A stretch of DNA of 64,000 nt from the IMG/VR virus record IMGVR_UViG_3300024239_000015, positions 169,378 through 233,377 of that record. One strand, given 5' to 3'. A program made the position numbers and the translations under genes. The notes under the pieces are model-generated. The model did no database searches and was not told where the DNA came from. It saw only the letters and a list, made by a program, of their open reading frames with translations. How positions within the stretch are numbered: the stretch's first letter is position 1; the number at the start of each line of letters is the position of its first letter. Positions 3,708 to 62,519 of the stretch are shown in pieces.

Positions 3708-5635
3708 ATGGACGCTACCATGATTCTGGTGCAGGCTTTATCTCTAGCCTACTGGGAAAGCCGTTTACAACACACGTCCGGCGGGTCCATACAATTGCTT
3801 AGCAACGTGTTAGAAGAAGTCCCTATCCCAGATCAGAACATCGATGGGGATCGTACACGAGAGATCGTCGTGGGGTTACGTGGTTTAGTGCTGCAGTATA
3901 TCAACAAACCCGACCAAGGTGCGATGAACCTTGGTACACTCCTGCAACGAGTAAGGATTATCTGTCGTGATCAAAATTCGATCTACGACGCATTTGCTAA
4001 TGGTTTAGCAGATGGCTTAGAAGGCATTGAGATTCAAAAACGTTGCTTTTTATACGCACAGGAACTTTCTGACTTTGTGAACTTACGGAAGTTTCAAAAA
4101 CAAGTCAAAGGGTTCTACGCCAAACACGCGTACTCAGGCGAGCAGATCGACATCGCTTCAGCCGCAGCAGAAATGATCGAACAGTTAGAGCACTACGTGT
4201 ATCACCGCGAGGGAGCTTTAATAGACGGAATTTCAGGGATTGTCGACTATGTCGATATTTCTGACGAAGAGAAAATGCAGGACTTGTTTAAGAAAGCTCA
4301 GGAGGAGTCGTCTTCTGAGGGTATTCTGAAAGTAGGCTGGCAGGGGCTGACTCGGATGTTCGGTTGGCACGGCGGTCTGAGGCGAGGCGACTTTTACTTA
4401 ATCGGTGCGCTGCAACACAACTACAAATCAGGGATGGTTCTGAACCTCACTAAACAAGTTGCTTTGTATAACACACCGTACATGATCGACCCGAAGAAGA
4501 AGCCACTGATACTTGTTGTAGCCGCTGAAAACGCTACGACAGACAACATGACGTTTTTGTACTCTTCTTTAGTAGAGAATGAAACACAGCAACCAGCGGA
4601 CTTGACTAGGGTCTCCTACGAGGAGATGACGTCCTATGTGAAGCGACGTTTAGGCGTGAACGGATACCACTTCCACCACGTACGTGTAAACCCCTCTGAC
4701 TTTGGTTACCCAGAACTCTTTACGTTGATTCTGAAACTAGAAGCAGAAGGATACGAGATACACCTACTGACGATTGACTACCTGAACATGTTCAGTAAAA
4801 AAGGTTGTACGGCTGGTGCCCAAGGGCAAGACGTGCGTGACCTATTTAGACGTGTAAGAAACTTTTGTGCTCCTTAATTACAGGGCGTTAAAGCCGTAAG
4901 GTTTTAATGAAACCTCTCTGAACTGCTGGAAACCCCTAAAGCTGTTTCACCACTGCGAGGCGAAAGCCAAAGCCACGGTTTGAAAACGAAACGGATGTAC
5001 AATGGGCAACCGTGAGACCTAAGGTCTCCTGTAGCAGCCAAGTCCCCTCCCGTCCTTGAGACGCGGGGAAAGGTTCAACGACTATCCCGTAGCTGGGAGT
5101 AGGACTCAAGTGAGTCCCAAGTGGAGAGCTCCTCCTATTCTACTAAGAGTAGAGGATGAAATGATATAGTCTGTTCTGTAGGGAAAGCCTACAGCTGCGT
5201 ACCCACGCTGTGAAGCGTAAGACGCGGGAGAGGTCTCACGAACCTCTCCGAACATAAAAGAGAAGAATAGCGGTCATGACACCGGCTCAGATCAGCACAG
5301 AGGCGAAGTACTTGTTGAGGAATGGTGTAGATGACTTCGTGAAAGAAATCGCCAACAAAGGCTACTGGGACTCCTGTAAAACGATCGACCAAGAAGTCGA
5401 TATGGAAATGTTGATCCATATCGTGAAACTCGATGGTCGGAGTTACTTAACGGTACAACGTGGGAAACACCGTGGCTTAGGCACCCGCATGACACCTGAG
5501 ACAGATCTGTATACCGTACTTCCGTTTGAGCCTGTAGGTGGTATACGAGATGACATCCATGGTCGTGATACCAGTATGTCTCGTCCAGGGGGCGCTAACC
5601 TACACGGGGATGGCGGTGAGTGGTTTGCAGCATGA
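3708..5635 (+). CDS. dnaB: DnaB-like replicative helicase, two exons join(3708..4874,5261..5635), 513 aa spliced
   Basis: GGLRRGDFYLIGALQHNYKS (phiKZ-type variant Walker A), LLTIDYL (Walker B), QRGKHRG. Splicing gives RVRNFCAP|RRIAVMTPAQIS in frame. Confidence 0.88.
4875..5260 (+). mobile_element. Group I intron (IA-like, no homing endonuclease ORF), 386 nt
   Basis: P AACTGCTGGAAA (4921), Q AGCAGCC (5033), R GTTCAACGACTA (5073), S ATGATATAGTCT (5161). The 5' exon ends in U paired to G in P1 (GCTCCT/AGGGCG); terminal G at 5260; removal restores the frame. Confidence 0.9.
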
Positions 5636-58743: not shown

Positions 58744-60489
58744 ATGCAAGAAGACCAAAACTTAGAAACCTTAGCTGACAAGCTCAATAAAGAGCTAGGT
58801 GAGCAGACTCCTCTGGAAGACCACGAGCACACTGCGAGTGTAGTAGCAGAAGAAACCACAGCAGTCGATGTAGGTGGGGGTATCGTCGTCGTTGATTCTA
58901 CTGCATTAGGTGGTATTGCCGTAGAGCTACCAGAAGGTGTGGAGTTTGAAGTCGCGAGTGACTCAAACTGGGAGTTGGTAGAAACCGACACACCCGCTGA
59001 AGAAGACGATCAGGAACCTGCAGCCCCAGAAATTCCTCTGATCAGAAACTCGGTCATTGACGCGTTCGAAGACCCGTCTCCGCGGACTACAGAAAACTCA
59101 GCGTCTGCAGTCAGCGCCAACTTCCCAAGCTGGTCAAATGACTACCCAGCCCTGTATGGCCTATATAGCAAACTCTCCAGCACCTTAGCAGCGTTAGAAG
59201 CTGCCACACTGAATTCACCTGGCACCGCAGAAGCTGCCGAGTGGGGCGCTACGTTACAAGGAGCATTAGCCGCGGGGTTCCATCCAACAGGCGGAGCGTT
59301 AGACTTACTGACTGAACGCCCCGCTCAGTGGACGAACACACCGTACTACGAAGGGAAGCGGTTAGTTCCTACCCGTGGTCGTCCTACCCCAGAAGGTGAC
59401 CAATACGTCGGTGACTCGATTGCCGCGCGTGTAGCGCAGTCTATCGGTGTCGGTCAAACGGTGACGTTCCCAATGTGGGCGTCTGGTTTTTACGTCACGA
59501 TCAAAGCACCCAACAACGCACGTTTACTGCAGTTGGAACGTCAGATTTCCATGAACAAAGATCACTTAGGGTATGCAACCTCTGGGATGATCTACGCAAA
59601 TGACGTCGCGTATTCACTGGAAACGTTAGTGGGTTACATTTTACAGGACATCGTGGACTGTAACGTACAGAACTGGAACCCAACGCTACTGAAAGAGTTA
59701 ATCCTCTCTCCTGACGTTCAGGTGTTAGCGTTAGCGTATGCGACTGCGATTTACACCAATGGCTTCCCGTTCTCTCAGCCGTGTACTGCACAGCTTGGGA
59801 AATGTTACCACACAGAAACTACGAAGCTTCACTTATTGAAGTGTTTACAAGTCGATGAGTCCAGACTGACGTTTGAACAACTCAAACACATGTCGAGCCG
59901 TGCTACCAAACATACGGTAGAACAAGTCCGTGCGTACCAAGAAAAACACACCGAAAGTCGTGTAGGTACAGCGCGCATTGCTAACGACATCACGGTGGTG
60001 TTCCGTGTCCCTACGTTGTCTGAATACTTCAGCTCTGCTGCGCGTTGGTTAGACGGAATTGAGACGTCGACCAAAGCCGCGTTCCGTGAAGCCTTAGCGG
60101 GCCAAGAACGCTTAGAGTACATGAAACAACAACTGCAAGCGTCATTGTGTCGTCAGTACGGACATTGGGTAAAAGAAGTCATCTTTGATGACCCAGCTCC
60201 TGATGGTGAATCAACGATCCAACGCTCGATTACCGTACCAGAATCGATTGACAAAGCTGTAGACTCTTTCAGTGCGTCAGACGACTACACCAACGTGTTT
60301 ATCGATGGGGTGTACCAGTATATCAACGATCGTACGATTGCACTTGCTGCGATTAACAACTACAAGTGTCCGTCGTGTGACAACTGGCACCACACCTCAC
60401 ACAGCAATCGGTTAGTCCTCCCAATCGATGCGGTGGGTACTTTTTTTACGCTCATGCAATTCAAGTTACTTCAGTACCTCCCGAACTGA
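58744..60489 (+). CDS. Conserved protein (phiKZ gp77-like), possible tail/baseplate assembly chaperone
   Basis: 'PMWASGFYVTIKAP', 'IYTNGFPFSQPC..C', C-terminal CxxC, ends near a T7 slippery site. Confidence 0.7.
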   Translation: MQEDQNLETLADKLNKELGEQTPLEDHEHTASVVAEETTAVDVGGGIVVVDSTALGGIAVELPEGVEFEVASDSNWELVETDTPAEEDDQEPAAPEIPLIRNSVIDAFEDPSPRTTENSASAVSANFPSWSNDYPALYGLYSKLSSTLAALEAATLNSPGTAEAAEWGATLQGALAAGFHPTGGALDLLTERPAQWTNTPYYEGKRLVPTRGRPTPEGDQYVGDSIAARVAQSIGVGQTVTFPMWASGFYVTIKAPNNARLLQLERQISMNKDHLGYATSGMIYANDVAYSLETLVGYILQDIVDCNVQNWNPTLLKELILSPDVQVLALAYATAIYTNGFPFSQPCTAQLGKCYHTETTKLHLLKCLQVDESRLTFEQLKHMSSRATKHTVEQVRAYQEKHTESRVGTARIANDITVVFRVPTLSEYFSSAARWLDGIETSTKAAFREALAGQERLEYMKQQLQASLCRQYGHWVKEVIFDDPAPDGESTIQRSITVPESIDKAVDSFSASDDYTNVFIDGVYQYINDRTIALAAINNYKCPSCDNWHHTSHSNRLVLPIDAVGTFFTLMQFKLLQYLPN

Positions 60490-60920
60490 AAGAACACCAG
60501 TACGTCGCTCATCCATCCTTTGGTTTAACCGTCAAAGGACGAGACTTTATCCAAGACGCACTCAACAAACTCCAAAGGAACCTCGATCCCTTTGAGTGTA
60601 GAATGCTACTGACCGAGTTGTATGAGCTTACGTACGGGATACGGCCTGACGTAGAGAACGAATCTCCTTTAGCGCCTGTGTCGTTTCATGAAGCGAATAA
60701 CACCCTGCGGTACTCTGGGTTGTTTTCCTACGTGGACCGATTTGAGCGTTTAAAAGTAGGAGAGACGTATCGACTCTCGCTGGTGGAGTTTTTAGAACTC
60801 CCTCGTGACATCGCCGATGAGTTGTTAGAGCGGGCGTTACTGCGCCTTCGGGAGAAAGGAAACAGTGTTGACTCTATAGAAGCAAAACTGTCAGAAGAGC
60901 TACGAAAACTAGGGGGGTAA
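60447..60920 (+). CDS. C-terminal extension ORF (tracked as 60603..60920), probably reached by a -1 frameshift
   Basis: The -1 frame is open from 60381 across T-TTT-TTT (60441-60447) to 60920; 'YRLSLVEFLELPRD' resembles tail-chaperone extensions. Confidence 0.55.
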   Translation, partial: YAHAIQVTSVPPELKEHQYVAHPSFGLTVKGRDFIQDALNKLQRNLDPFECRMLLTELYELTYGIRPDVENESPLAPVSFHEANNTLRYSGLFSYVDRFERLKVGETYRLSLVEFLELPRDIADELLERALLRLREKGNSVDSIEAKLSEELRKLGG

Positions 60921-60922
60921 AC

Positions 60923-61387
60923 ATGCCCATCGTCAGTGAAAACGAACACGATCTCTTAGAGTGCCCAGCGCAGACTATACTCTGCCCTGTCAACACGGTA
61001 GGGGTGATGGGGTCTGGTTTGGCTTACTACTTTCGTATGCTCTCTGAACCTTTCTTTTTAAAGTATAAAGAGTTGTGTTTGACTCGTAAGTTTACCATCC
61101 GTACGCTTTGGTTGTACAAACCTAAACCGGAAGAAAACATCCCGTATTGGTTCTTAGCCTTTCCTACGAAACAAAACTGGACGATGCCTTCAAAAGTCGA
61201 ATGGGTTGAAGACAACTTAAAACGATTGGTGGAAGCCATCCCTAAAAAGGGAATTACGTCCTTAGGTGTGCCTTACTTAGGGTGTGGGAAAGGAGGACTG
61301 GATTACCAAAAGGTAGTCCGTCCTCTTTTATACAAGTACTTAGACCCACTGGACATCCCTGTACATATCTGCGAGAGGAAGTTTTGA
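60923..61387 (+). CDS. Macrodomain (DarG/Appr-1-p-like) ADP-ribosylhydrolase
   Basis: 'PVNTVGVMGSGLA', 'FPTKQNW', 'VPYLGCGKGGL'. Confidence 0.85.
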   Translation: MPIVSENEHDLLECPAQTILCPVNTVGVMGSGLAYYFRMLSEPFFLKYKELCLTRKFTIRTLWLYKPKPEENIPYWFLAFPTKQNWTMPSKVEWVEDNLKRLVEAIPKKGITSLGVPYLGCGKGGLDYQKVVRPLLYKYLDPLDIPVHICERKF

Positions 61388-61890
61388 TGCCTGTATTTAA
61401 AATGATTGCTGCTGTCGCGTTTGGTAACTTAGCTGTCGGACAGCAAGGGAAGATCCCATGGAGAATCAAAGAGGACTTACAGCACTTTAAACGCATGACG
61501 TTACACACGTGTGTGGTGATGGGTCGTAAGACGTTTGAATCCTTAGGGTCTAAACCACTCCCAGAGCGTACCAACGTAGTACTGTCTACTCAACCACGCC
61601 CAGTGGATTTAAACCCAGCGGTGGTGTGGTTGAACTCGTATGACGCTGTACTTGAGTACACGAAAGACGAAGAGCTGGTGTGGGTCATTGGTGGTGGGGA
61701 AATTTACGAGTTGTTCTTACCCATCGCACAAGAGCTGGTGCTCACGTGGGTGTTACAGCACGTACCTGACGCAGACGCATTCTTCCCTGACGTCCCGTAC
61801 GAGCACTACACCCTGAAACGAGAAGAGCTCACCTCGACTCCGATTCAGTCATGGGTGATCACGTACACCAAAAAAGAAAGTACGGAATAA
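61387..61890 (+). CDS. folA: Dihydrofolate reductase
   Basis: 'IPWRIKEDLQHFK', 'VVMGRKTFESL', 'PLPERTNVVLS', 'VIGGGEIY', 'DAFFP'; TGATG coupling to the macrodomain gene. Confidence 0.95.
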   Translation: MPVFKMIAAVAFGNLAVGQQGKIPWRIKEDLQHFKRMTLHTCVVMGRKTFESLGSKPLPERTNVVLSTQPRPVDLNPAVVWLNSYDAVLEYTKDEELVWVIGGGEIYELFLPIAQELVLTWVLQHVPDADAFFPDVPYEHYTLKREELTSTPIQSWVITYTKKESTE

Positions 61891-61894
61891 AAGC

Positions 61895-61922
61895 TACAGG
61901 AGGAGCAAGTGCTCCTCCTGTA
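61895..61922. terminator. Bidirectional terminator
   Basis: TACAGGAGGAGC-AAGT-GCTCCTCCTGTA. Confidence 0.75.
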
Positions 61923-61928
61923 TGCCGC

Positions 61929-62519
61929 TTACACTTGTATGGCTGGAACTACATCGGGCCAAATGGCTTTAATAACAATCCACTTTGCTTGCTCTACTGG
62001 CATACCTTGACCGATCGCTTCCGCAGCTTCAATCAAAGAACAACGACGTGGAGTGATGTCCTGCCCCAAGCTAACCAGTTGTCTTGCGACGTGTTTATCC
62101 AAAACTTCCAGCTGATACTGCGTGGTGTGGAATTGCTCGTACGTGATGGTACCCTCAACCACTAAGTTCGCTGCGATGCAGCTGGCCACTTTGTAGTTTT
62201 GCCACTCCGCCGACACACGAACGGTACGGTGTTCTTCTTCGGTGGTAGGAACCACCAACCCCATCAACGCAGCACGACAATAAGGAACAGTCCCAGTATG
62301 CGCGTGAGAGATCGTGCCGTATAAGGCAAAAACTTTATCGATGGTGCGTCTGAGTGTCAGCGCGGCTTCTTCTTGGTTCCGGACCAACGTGGAATCGAAA
62401 GATACCCCGTGTTTAGCAGAGTACCAACACGATTTTAAATTAGGGCGCTTACCGCTACGAACAATAGCAGCAACATTCTTTACGAAACGGATAACGACAA
62501 CAAATAATTGCTTTAACAT
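61929..62519 (-). CDS. Hypothetical protein
   Basis: AAGGA RBS. Confidence 0.65.
   Translation of the reverse strand: MLKQLFVVVIRFVKNVAAIVRSGKRPNLKSCWYSAKHGVSFDSTLVRNQEEAALTLRRTIDKVFALYGTISHAHTGTVPYCRAALMGLVVPTTEEEHRTVRVSAEWQNYKVASCIAANLVVEGTITYEQFHTTQYQLEVLDKHVARQLVSLGQDITPRRCSLIEAAEAIGQGMPVEQAKWIVIKAIWPDVVPAIQV

Follow-up and report, generated by a model that had tools for sequence, protein, structure and literature searches.

A run of seven T residues near the 3' end of a core gene of phiKZ-like (nucleus-forming) jumbo phages most likely causes ribosomes to slip back one base, yielding a 581-aa and a 725-aa protein. The run sits in a 64,000-nucleotide stretch of DNA (hereafter, the window), in an ORF homologous to phiKZ gp77 (chimallivirus core gene cg18). 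A T run on the same Phe-Phe motif, followed by an open -1 frame, was found in 86 of the 88 loci that we examined, yet none of the 21 GenBank records that we inspected annotates a frameshift. We found no publication describing it, nor any proteomic report of the fusion.

The slippery site and the open -1 frame

The original prediction held that the ORF carries a heptamer in X-XXY-YYZ phase, followed by a -1 frame without stops and without an ATG until far downstream, and each of these sequence statements proved correct. The codons around the site are GGT ACT TTT TTT ACG. The -1 frame is closed by TGA at 60378-60380 and open from 60381 to the stop at 60918-60920, and contains no ATG, GTG or TTG before ATG 60603. 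This ATG has only a 'GAG' upstream, whereas the neighboring genes have AAGGA or AGGGG(G) 5-9 nt before their starts. The predicted fusion comprises 568 + 157 = 725 aa.

Features of the gp77 locus (positions in the window)
Feature	Position	Strand	Description
0-frame gene	58744-60489	+	Homologue of phiKZ gp77 (cg18); short product 581 aa; residues about 222-574 have a predicted T4 gp26/gp51-like (PF12322) fold
Slippery heptamer	60441-60447	+	T TTT TTT (codons ACT TTT TTT) on the conserved Phe-Phe of the motif P-[LIV]-D-x4-F-F
Start-less -1-frame segment	60447-60602	+	52 codons; contains the conserved motif Y-V-A-H-P-S-F-G (60501-60524), upstream of any ATG/GTG/TTG
Dual-coding overlap	60448-60489	+	0-frame C-terminal tail (13 codons plus TGA at 60487-60489) and start of the -1 extension; FFTLxxQ(R/K) conserved in the 0 frame and FFYPxRP in the -1 frame
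Small predicted hairpin	60465-60495	+	17-22 nt after the heptamer; not conserved in relatives and too far from the site to count as a demonstrated stimulator
Distal part of the -1 extension	60603-60920	+	Helical, with a long C-terminal helix; would be called as a 105-aa ORF from ATG 60603, which lacks a Shine-Dalgarno sequence; matches phrog_12109 only from profile position 44 onward

To assess how often such a pattern arises by chance, we counted in-phase XXXYYYZ heptamers in this genome. There are 308 in 320 ORFs, and 7 are followed by a -1 frame running at least 100 codons past the stop, so in this genome alone the arrangement is not statistically unusual. Of the other six, we checked five, and in these either a start codon lies 2-16 codons into the -1 frame or the -1 product has no homology, suggesting ordinary adjacent genes. 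The sixth (61246) is explained by the DHFR ORF, whose real start is further downstream. Only the gp77 site has no start codon for 54 codons. The weight of the evidence hence comes from comparison with relatives.

Because homopolymers are error-prone, we asked whether the T7 run could be an assembly error. Logan contigs of four runs (one study, 2018-2020, depth 13-257x) all carry T7 without indels, although these runs may include the source sample. A near-identity DNA search of GenBank phages found nothing, and the only IMG/VR twin is 100% identical and probably comes from the same source, so it is not independent. One GenBank record, RTH11, does differ by one T from its relative and has an out-of-frame C-terminus. 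However, the same frame arrangement holds in 86 of 88 loci sequenced by many groups, both the 0-frame tail and the -1 product are conserved, and no fused version was seen. These data make a miscounted homopolymer, a pseudogene or DNA-level phase variation of the run that fuses the ORFs in a subpopulation very improbable.

Conservation across jumbo phages

The absence of the slippery run from homologues, or stops between it and the downstream ORF, had been named in advance as grounds for rejecting the idea. We therefore examined 88 loci, representing about 50 lineages, from phages of Pseudomonas, Erwinia, Vibrio, Salmonella, E. coli, Ralstonia, Xanthomonas and Bacillus and from metagenomes. In 86 of them, a T5-T8 run lies on the same F-F motif, the 0 frame stops 11-25 codons later, and the -1 frame stays open for 151-186 codons, while the +1 frame usually closes early. 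None has a stop between the run and the downstream ORF. These loci include phiKZ, PhiPA3, Goslar, RAY, an SPN3US-like phage, Aphrodite1, pTD1, RSL2, RP12, Miami, CR5, JM-2012 and Bacillus phage AgentSmith. The interpretation of the site as a programmed -1 frameshift is thus supported.

The site is conserved beyond what the amino acid sequence requires. The first Phe codon is TTT in 37 of 37 lineages, although TTT makes up 35.5% of Phe codons in these genes and 0 of 12-18 in the GC-rich ones (P about 1e-21). One caveat here is that the lineages are related, and hence the P values quoted are nominal. The preceding codon ends in T in 32/37 lineages, and the heptamer is canonical in about 45 of 51 lineages. 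The wobble positions of the site carry 1.3 and 2.0 bits of information, compared to 0.14-0.86 for the wobble positions upstream.

We next asked whether the downstream ORF could be a separate gene with its own start. In 32 of 34 canonical-heptamer lineages, the first ATG/GTG/TTG lies downstream of the conserved HV..FG motif. There is none for 54 codons in the window, for 87 in phiKZ, and for more than 100 in several lineages (our labels L023, L032, L035 and L061-63). The N-termini called for 150 database relatives scatter over profile positions -25 to 59. Yet the start-less segment appears to be translated: the nominal P of having no stop there is about 1e-71, and differences between close relatives fall 184/103/357 on -1-frame codon positions 1/2/3, as in coding sequence.

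In favor of a separate gene, some relatives (Psa21, PA1C, LucasX, pTD1, RP12) do have an ATG or GTG shortly after the gp77 stop, and annotators call genes there. In the window, initiation might be imagined at CTG 60486, which overlaps the stop codon as cTGA, at ATT 60459, by termination-reinitiation, or only at ATG 60603. However, no Shine-Dalgarno sequence precedes any of these three codons, no start position or codon is conserved, and a product starting at 60603 would lack about 35 conserved residues. The conserved Val codon was considered as a hidden GTG start and rejected, as it is GTG in only a minority of lineages, GTC in the window, and ATT/ATC in phiKZ-type phages. Neither the invariant TTT nor the opening of the -1 frame exactly from the run is explained by this reading. 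That only an independently initiated 105-aa protein exists had also been stated beforehand as a refuting outcome; independent initiation cannot explain the conserved start-less segment, and we regard the absence of recoding as quite unlikely.

The phase of the run matters. Of six lineages with a degenerate heptamer (NNR TTT TTT, or ATA TTT TTC), five have a start codon upstream of the motif, versus 2 of 34 canonical ones (Fisher P = 1.8e-4). T6 runs in canonical phase (NNT TTT TTC) still lack early starts. Since run length varies from T5 to T8 and some lineages have an early start codon, the frameshift may be dispensable in those lineages. No in-frame fusion was seen in the 88 loci or among the 150 best database hits, which argues that both products are needed.

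Proposed mechanism of slippage

We consider a programmed -1 ribosomal frameshift, conserved across phiKZ-like (Chimalliviridae) and related jumbo phages, to be the likely explanation. In this view, most ribosomes would read to the TGA and make the 581-aa protein, while a fraction would slip back one base when two tRNA-Phe occupy TTT TTT (60442-60447), re-pair on T TTT TT, read TAC at 60447 and continue in the -1 frame. The last 13 residues would be replaced by a 157-aa helical domain. What our analysis establishes is the site, the open frame, the conservation of both, nucleotide-level selection on the run, and coding-type evolution of the start-less segment. That slippage occurs on the ribosome, its efficiency, and the role of the two forms are inferences; there is no direct protein or RNA evidence (no junction peptide, no ribosome profiling and no RNA reads), as the only reads examined were DNA contigs, and mRNA from phiKZ-infected cells was not examined. 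The predicted fold suggests a fixed-ratio pair of baseplate-hub or tail assembly chaperones, as with lambda G/GT.

To look for stimulatory elements, we folded the downstream sequences. Folding is only mildly better than in shuffled sequences (mean z -0.84; window z -1.47), with no common hairpin at 5-9 nt, and no conserved upstream Shine-Dalgarno-like sequence was seen that could pair with the anti-Shine-Dalgarno. The lack of a conserved stimulator counts against a programmed frameshift, although not all known sites have one.

A homopolymer without a detectable stimulator is also compatible with transcriptional slippage, in which the RNA polymerase (in these phages a phage-encoded multisubunit enzyme) would add one U to a fraction of the mRNAs. 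Chimallivirus polymerases are unusual and of unknown slippage behavior. Moreover, the RTH11 record has T7 where its close relative LucasX has T8 and, as deposited, needs +1 U for the normal C-terminus and +2 U for the fusion. On the other hand, the runs are short (mostly 7, never more than 8, and 6 in several lineages that lack a start codon), whereas known bacterial cases use about 9 or more. T6 in X-XXY-YYZ phase goes without a start codon, while T6 in phase 0 always comes with one. Furthermore, T7/A7 runs are not depleted in this genome (31 observed, compared to roughly 21 expected from base composition). We view transcriptional slippage as unlikely, though less so than the other alternatives.

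Predicted fold and genomic context

The original prediction likened the gene to tail chaperones of the G/GT type and the distal part to P2 E' or lambda T. The latter resemblance is not supported: Pfam gave no hit for either piece, and fold searches gave no match to the gpG/gpT or E/E' families. Nor does the gene lie between tail tube and tape-measure genes or next to tail genes; its neighbors are a virion RNA polymerase beta subunit, gp79-like and gp78-like genes, a macro-domain gene and DHFR. The two-product logic is nonetheless apt by analogy, not by homology, because the conserved part of gp77 has the predicted fold of the T4 gp26/gp51 baseplate-hub assembly chaperones. Residues 222-574 match a PF12322 cluster in the ESM Atlas with TM 0.62 by target over 240 residues, and Foldseek against BFVD matched 'baseplate hub' proteins of about 250 aa (E 3e-3 to 7e-2, probability 0.95-1.0, TM about 0.5 by target). 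Both sides of each comparison are predicted models. A role in hub or tail assembly was not assayed; we found no functional data, and gp81/gp82 are not mentioned in the text of the Goslar virion structure paper.

At the sequence level this relationship is weak. No member of the A2 set matches PF12322, even at E up to 1, and two of 35 members touch phrog_150, the corresponding phrog of T4 gp26/gp51, weakly. Profile-profile comparison with T4 gp26 gives probabilities of 7-26%, with a weak alignment joining the C-terminal CxxC and the F-F-x-L end; we treat this only as an aside to the fold match. PDB sequence searches, Foldseek against PDB and Swiss-Prot, and a wide VIA search gave no meaningful match for gp77 or the extension; proteasome and GPCR rows had TM below 0.15 or Z below 6 and were rejected. 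A predicted interaction between the extension and the gp77 core scored 0.55, against a best control of 0.22. This mark was reached by 58 of 80 solved complexes and 2 of 110 mismatched pairs, but passes at or below 0.60 are more often wrong than right, and we do not rely on this weak support.

Implications and related systems

gp77 is one of the roughly 70 core genes of Chimalliviridae and is listed as a 'hypothetical protein'. In all 21 GenBank records inspected, the downstream ORF is annotated as an unrelated short or overlapping gene (e.g. phiKZ 076.4 at 80 aa, AgentSmith_12, CR5_041 and RAY gp266). If the frameshift is real, the annotation of this locus in about 250 sequenced jumbo phages, including therapy candidates, needs correcting, a conserved domain becomes part of the core proteome, and a core gene of unknown function gains a testable role as a two-form baseplate-hub or tail assembly chaperone. 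It would also provide a natural U-rich frameshift site that works across very different hosts, from Pseudomonas to Bacillus, without an evident stimulator. The site matters for phage engineering as well, because synonymous recoding of this Phe-Phe could silently remove the long form.

A broader possibility, which we offer tentatively, is that every nucleus-forming jumbo phage and a wider set of relatives (more than 1,600 protein clusters carry the extension domain) depends on an unannotated, obligatory -1 frameshift in cg18 to make a fixed-ratio pair of gp26/gp51-type baseplate-hub assembly chaperones. This would be an independent reinvention, in an unrelated protein family, of the lambda G/GT logic. 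Together with T4 gp26/gp26', it would suggest that a short form plus an extended form is a general requirement of contractile-tail hub assembly.

T4 gene 26 also yields two products (26 and 26'), but by internal initiation, and it has no T run or open -1 frame; gp77 is also 2-3 times longer than its T4 counterparts. In E. coli dnaX, a homopolymer-type heptamer (A AAA AAG) sets the ratio of tau to gamma, but there the shift truncates the protein and depends on an upstream Shine-Dalgarno-like sequence and a downstream hairpin, neither of which is conserved here. In lambda G/GT and P2 E/E+E', the conserved -1 frameshifts of long-tailed phages (Levin 1993; Christie 2002; Xu 2004), a slip on a heptamer close to the 3' end of an assembly-factor gene likewise gives a minor, C-terminally extended form that shares the N-terminal body, and no strong stimulator is needed. 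The gp77 body is about five times larger, and its extension has no detectable similarity to gpT or E'. P2 uses a T-rich heptamer, T TTT TTG, which is also found at the gp77 site of pEa_SNUABM_54.

A slippery heptamer near the end of the gp77 homolog

The original prediction placed a run of seven T near the 3' end of a 581-codon ORF, in X-XXY-YYZ phase and followed by an open –1 frame without an early start codon, and the sequence bears out each of these statements. The codons across the site read GGT ACT TTT TTT ACG, and hence the heptamer is T TTT TTT, followed by 13 sense codons and TGA. Between the TGA that closes the –1 frame upstream and the stop that ends it, there is no ATG, GTG or TTG before the single ATG listed in the table, and a slip would give a product of 568 + 157 = 725 aa. 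This ATG has no Shine-Dalgarno sequence comparable to those of the neighboring genes, which carry AAGGA or AGGGG(G) 5–9 nt upstream. The run is not an assembly artifact, as contigs of four runs from one subsurface-metagenome study, at a depth of 13–257x, all carry T7 without an indel, although these may include the source sample. Sequencing run X4 holds a second strain, with 8 substitutions in one short stretch, 7 of which are at third codon positions of the 0 frame. No further variant contig appears in the stretch that holds the slip site and the extension.

On its own, the pattern is not rare. This 233-kb genome has 308 in-phase heptamers, 7 of which are followed by a long –1 ORF. In the others that we checked, a start codon follows within 2–16 codons, so they look like ordinary adjacent genes; only this site has no start for 54 codons. 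One of these seven in-phase heptamers, AAAGGGA, lies in the downstream macro-domain gene (PF01661). This gene is overlapped by a 202-aa GTG ORF whose DHFR homology starts only at residue 36. The real DHFR start is probably further downstream, in which case there is no real overlap and the heptamer is most likely coincidental.

Coordinates of the features described (window positions unless a locus of the comparative set, denoted L, is named)
Feature	Position	Strand
ORF homologous to phiKZ gp77, 581 aa	58744-60489	+
Codons GGT ACT TTT TTT ACG	60436-60450	+
T TTT TTT heptamer	60441-60447	+
TGA closing the –1 frame upstream	60378-60380	+
Stop of the –1 frame	60918-60920	+
First ATG of the –1 frame	60603	+
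Regions bearing on the second strain in run X4	60285-60411 and 58797-58926	
Substitutions of the second strain	60315-60381	
Stretch without further variant contigs	60382-61359	
Macro-domain gene (PF01661)	60923-61387	
202-aa GTG ORF with DHFR homology	61282-61890	
Probable real DHFR start	near 61385	
In-phase AAAGGGA heptamer	61246	
GC-rich hairpin with T tract	61895-61922	
ORF convergent with the DHFR gene	61929-62519	
Annotated ORF after gp77, L001 (phiKZ)	3985-4227	
Annotated ORF after gp77, L003	2711-2938	
Annotated ORF after gp77, L076	4329-4562	
Annotated ORF after gp77, L086	2724-2948	
Annotated ORF after gp77, L078	2424-2972	
T run, L002 (Xanthomonas phage RTH11, OQ790161.1)	about 2429-2435	
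T run, L004 (LucasX)	2428-2435	
T4 locus with gene 26, L091 (NC_000866)	3803-4429	minus

Identity of the gene and of the downstream frame

The 581-aa protein belongs to phrog_4585 and is 26–34% identical to PHIKZ077 and its homologs in about 250 jumbo phages. In the supplement of Prichard et al. 2023, this gene is listed as chimallivirus core gene cg18 (Goslar gp081, PhiKZ gp077, RAY gp267), 'hypothetical protein'. Synteny with phiKZ is kept, with a virion RNA polymerase beta-subunit gene and a gp79-like gene on the minus strand, and the gp78-like and gp77-like genes on the plus strand, followed here by the macro-domain gene and DHFR. Between the convergent DHFR gene and the next ORF lies a strong 12-bp GC-rich hairpin followed by a T tract (read on the minus strand), probably a bidirectional terminator that ends the gp78-gp77-macro-DHFR transcription unit. 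The 157 residues read from the slip site match phrog_12109 over profile positions 9–144 of 147, whereas the 105-aa ORF from the first ATG matches only positions 44–145. Homology therefore extends about 35 residues upstream of the only start codon.

Conservation of the run and of the open –1 frame

Whether homologs carry the slippery run, and whether the –1 frame between the run and the downstream ORF is free of stops, had been set beforehand as the test of a frameshift. To carry this out, we collected the window itself, six GenBank loci, 66 IMG/VR loci found with a gp77 alignment, and 15 further named phages. In 86 of these 88 loci, the motif P-[LIV]-D-x4-F-F carries a T5–T8 run, the 0 frame stops 11–25 codons later, and the –1 frame read from the run is open for 151–186 codons, while the +1 frame usually closes early. 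The two exceptions are locus L047, which is cut by its contig end, and RTH11, considered below. The set spans phages of Pseudomonas, Erwinia, Xanthomonas, Ralstonia, Burkholderia-type, Vibrio, Aeromonas, Salmonella, Klebsiella, Cronobacter, E. coli and Bacillus. The –1 products align along their whole length, with consensus FFYPxRP..., HVxxPxFG, Y..YGI, P-L..V....E and F(L)..P.

We then clustered the loci at 60% identity into 37 lineages. The first Phe codon is TTT in 37/37 lineages, although TTT makes up only 35.5% of the Phe codons in these genes, and 0 of 12–18 in the GC-rich ones. The preceding codon ends in T in 32/37 lineages. The run length is 7 in 18 lineages, 8 in 10, 6 in 8 and 5 in 1. 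Wobble positions –1 and +2 of the site carry 1.3 and 2.0 bits, compared to 0.14–0.86 bits at the wobble positions upstream of the site. Nominal probabilities are about 1e-21 for the TTT result and about 1e-71 for the absence of –1 stops between the run and the first start codon. One caveat here is that the lineages are related, and hence these values overstate independence, but the direction is unambiguous.

The extension lacks a start codon of its own in most lineages

In 32 of 34 canonical-heptamer lineages where the HV..FG motif could be located, the first ATG/GTG/TTG lies downstream of that motif. There is no start codon for more than 100 codons in loci L023, L032, L035 and L061–63, for 87 codons in phiKZ, 82 in locus L042, 70 in RAY, about 90 in AgentSmith, and 54 here. 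A profile of the extension finds 1,657 protein clusters in a library of 1.8 billion proteins. The best 150 are all 104–191 aa, and their called N-termini scatter over profile positions –25 to 59, which is the signature of gene callers taking whatever start codon happens to be present. None of these 150 is an in-frame fusion. Between close relatives, differences in the segment after the 0-frame stop and before any start codon fall 184/103/357 on –1-frame codon positions 1/2/3. That segment is therefore translated.

GenBank annotations of the ORF after gp77 are inconsistent with one another. The product is called as 80 aa in phiKZ (076.4), 75 aa in pEa_SNUABM_54_00304, 74 aa in CR5_041 and 77 aa in AgentSmith_12, while RAY gp266 is an ORF overlapping gp267 by 136 nt. 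These truncated or overlapping calls miss the conserved N-terminal 60–90 residues, and none of the inspected records carries a ribosomal_slippage feature.

Ribosomal versus transcriptional slippage

Three observations favor slippage by the ribosome, although direct data are lacking. First, phase matters. The six lineages whose heptamer is degenerate (NN[A/G] TTT TTT or ATA TTT TTC: Psa21-like, PhiPA3, PA1C and loci L040, L043 and L065) have a start codon upstream of the conserved motif in 5/6 cases, compared to 2/34 for canonical heptamers (Fisher p = 1.8e-4). T6 runs in canonical phase (NNT TTT TTC: loci L012, L022 and L055, Aphrodite1 and PS2) still lack early starts. Second, the runs are 7–8 and never longer, which is short for known bacterial transcriptional slippage. 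Third, T7/A7 runs are not avoided in this genome. Even the degenerate lineages keep the –1 frame open from the run to their start codon, so some slippage may persist there.

No conserved stimulator was found. The 80 nt after the site fold only slightly better than shuffled sequences (mean z –0.84; z for the window –1.47, with a hairpin 17–22 nt away), and there is no upstream enrichment of Shine-Dalgarno-like sequence. Lambda G/GT also lacks a defined stimulator.

The only hint toward polymerase slippage comes from RTH11, whose record has ATT TTT TTA CCC (T7) where LucasX, its relative of more than 60% identity, has ATT TTT TTT ATC (T8). As deposited, the 0 frame of RTH11 runs on for 70 unrelated codons, such that the annotated 627-aa protein WJJ54901.1 ends in about 70 out-of-frame residues, the –1 frame gives the normal C-terminus, and the extension lies in the +1/–2 frame. 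A homopolymer sequencing error is the simplest and probable reading, the alternative being a tolerated 1-nt deletion.

Taken together, the central inference of the original prediction, that one gene gives 581-aa and 725-aa products through a –1 slip, is strongly supported by the comparative evidence but has no experimental proof. We are highly confident that recoding at the run makes the fusion, and reasonably confident, to a lesser degree, that the recoding is ribosomal. The mechanism itself is of a known kind; what is new is the gene family, its universality in a whole phage family, and the link to T4-type hub chaperones. Full-text searches on frameshifting in phiKZ and the Chimalliviridae and on phiKZ gp77 gave no paper describing this frameshift or a function for gp77, which, given incomplete coverage of the literature, is absence of evidence only. 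No match of the extension to gpT or E' emerged to support the similarity that had been suggested for its distal part.

Predicted folds and possible roles of the two products

Structure prediction had been named in advance as a way to examine the proposed tail-chaperone logic, which holds by analogy and by predicted fold. The AlphaFold model built from 35 homologs is confident for residues about 200–580 (pLDDT 85–95) and has no match in the PDB or Swiss-Prot libraries. In BFVD, besides the jumbo-phage homologs, it matches proteins of about 250 aa named 'baseplate hub subunit' and 'baseplate hub assembly chaperone, T4-like' (E 3e-3 to 7e-2, probability 0.95–1.0, TM about 0.5 by target). In the ESM Atlas, residues 222–574 match a 440-member PF12322 (T4_baseplate) cluster with TM 0.62 by target over 240 residues. 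T4 gp26 and gp51 are paralogs that both fall in phrog_150 / PF12322, and NCBI names the family 'gp26 family baseplate hub assembly chaperone'. Sequence support is weak: two of 35 members touch phrog_150, and hhalign aligns only the C-terminal CxxC and the F-F-x-L end, with probability 7–26%. One GenBank record (AgentSmith_11) already carries the name 'putative baseplate hub assembly protein'.

The extension is predicted to be helical with a long C-terminal helix, and has no informative fold match. A complex prediction of the extension against the gp77 core gave weak support only, with a score of 0.55 against a best control of 0.22. This mark was reached by 58 of 80 solved complexes and 2 of 110 mismatched pairs, and passes at or below 0.60 are unreliable. 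The slip would occur inside the last predicted helix (residues 563–578), so the long form would lose the conserved FFTLxxQ(R/K) tail.

Our reading, which is inference, is a major short chaperone and a minor extended one acting in hub or tail assembly. This is the same logic as in lambda G/GT and P2 E/E+E', in an unrelated protein family and outside the tail gene cluster. T4 gene 26 also gives two products (26 and an annotated 26'), but by internal initiation. T4 gp26 ends in ...EFFELL, which the weak profile alignment places on the FFTL frameshift motif of gp77, yet T4 has no T run there (GAG TTC TTT GAG) and its –1 frame is closed. Gene 25 of T4 starts 1 nt before the end of gene 26, in the –1 frame, with its own ATG.
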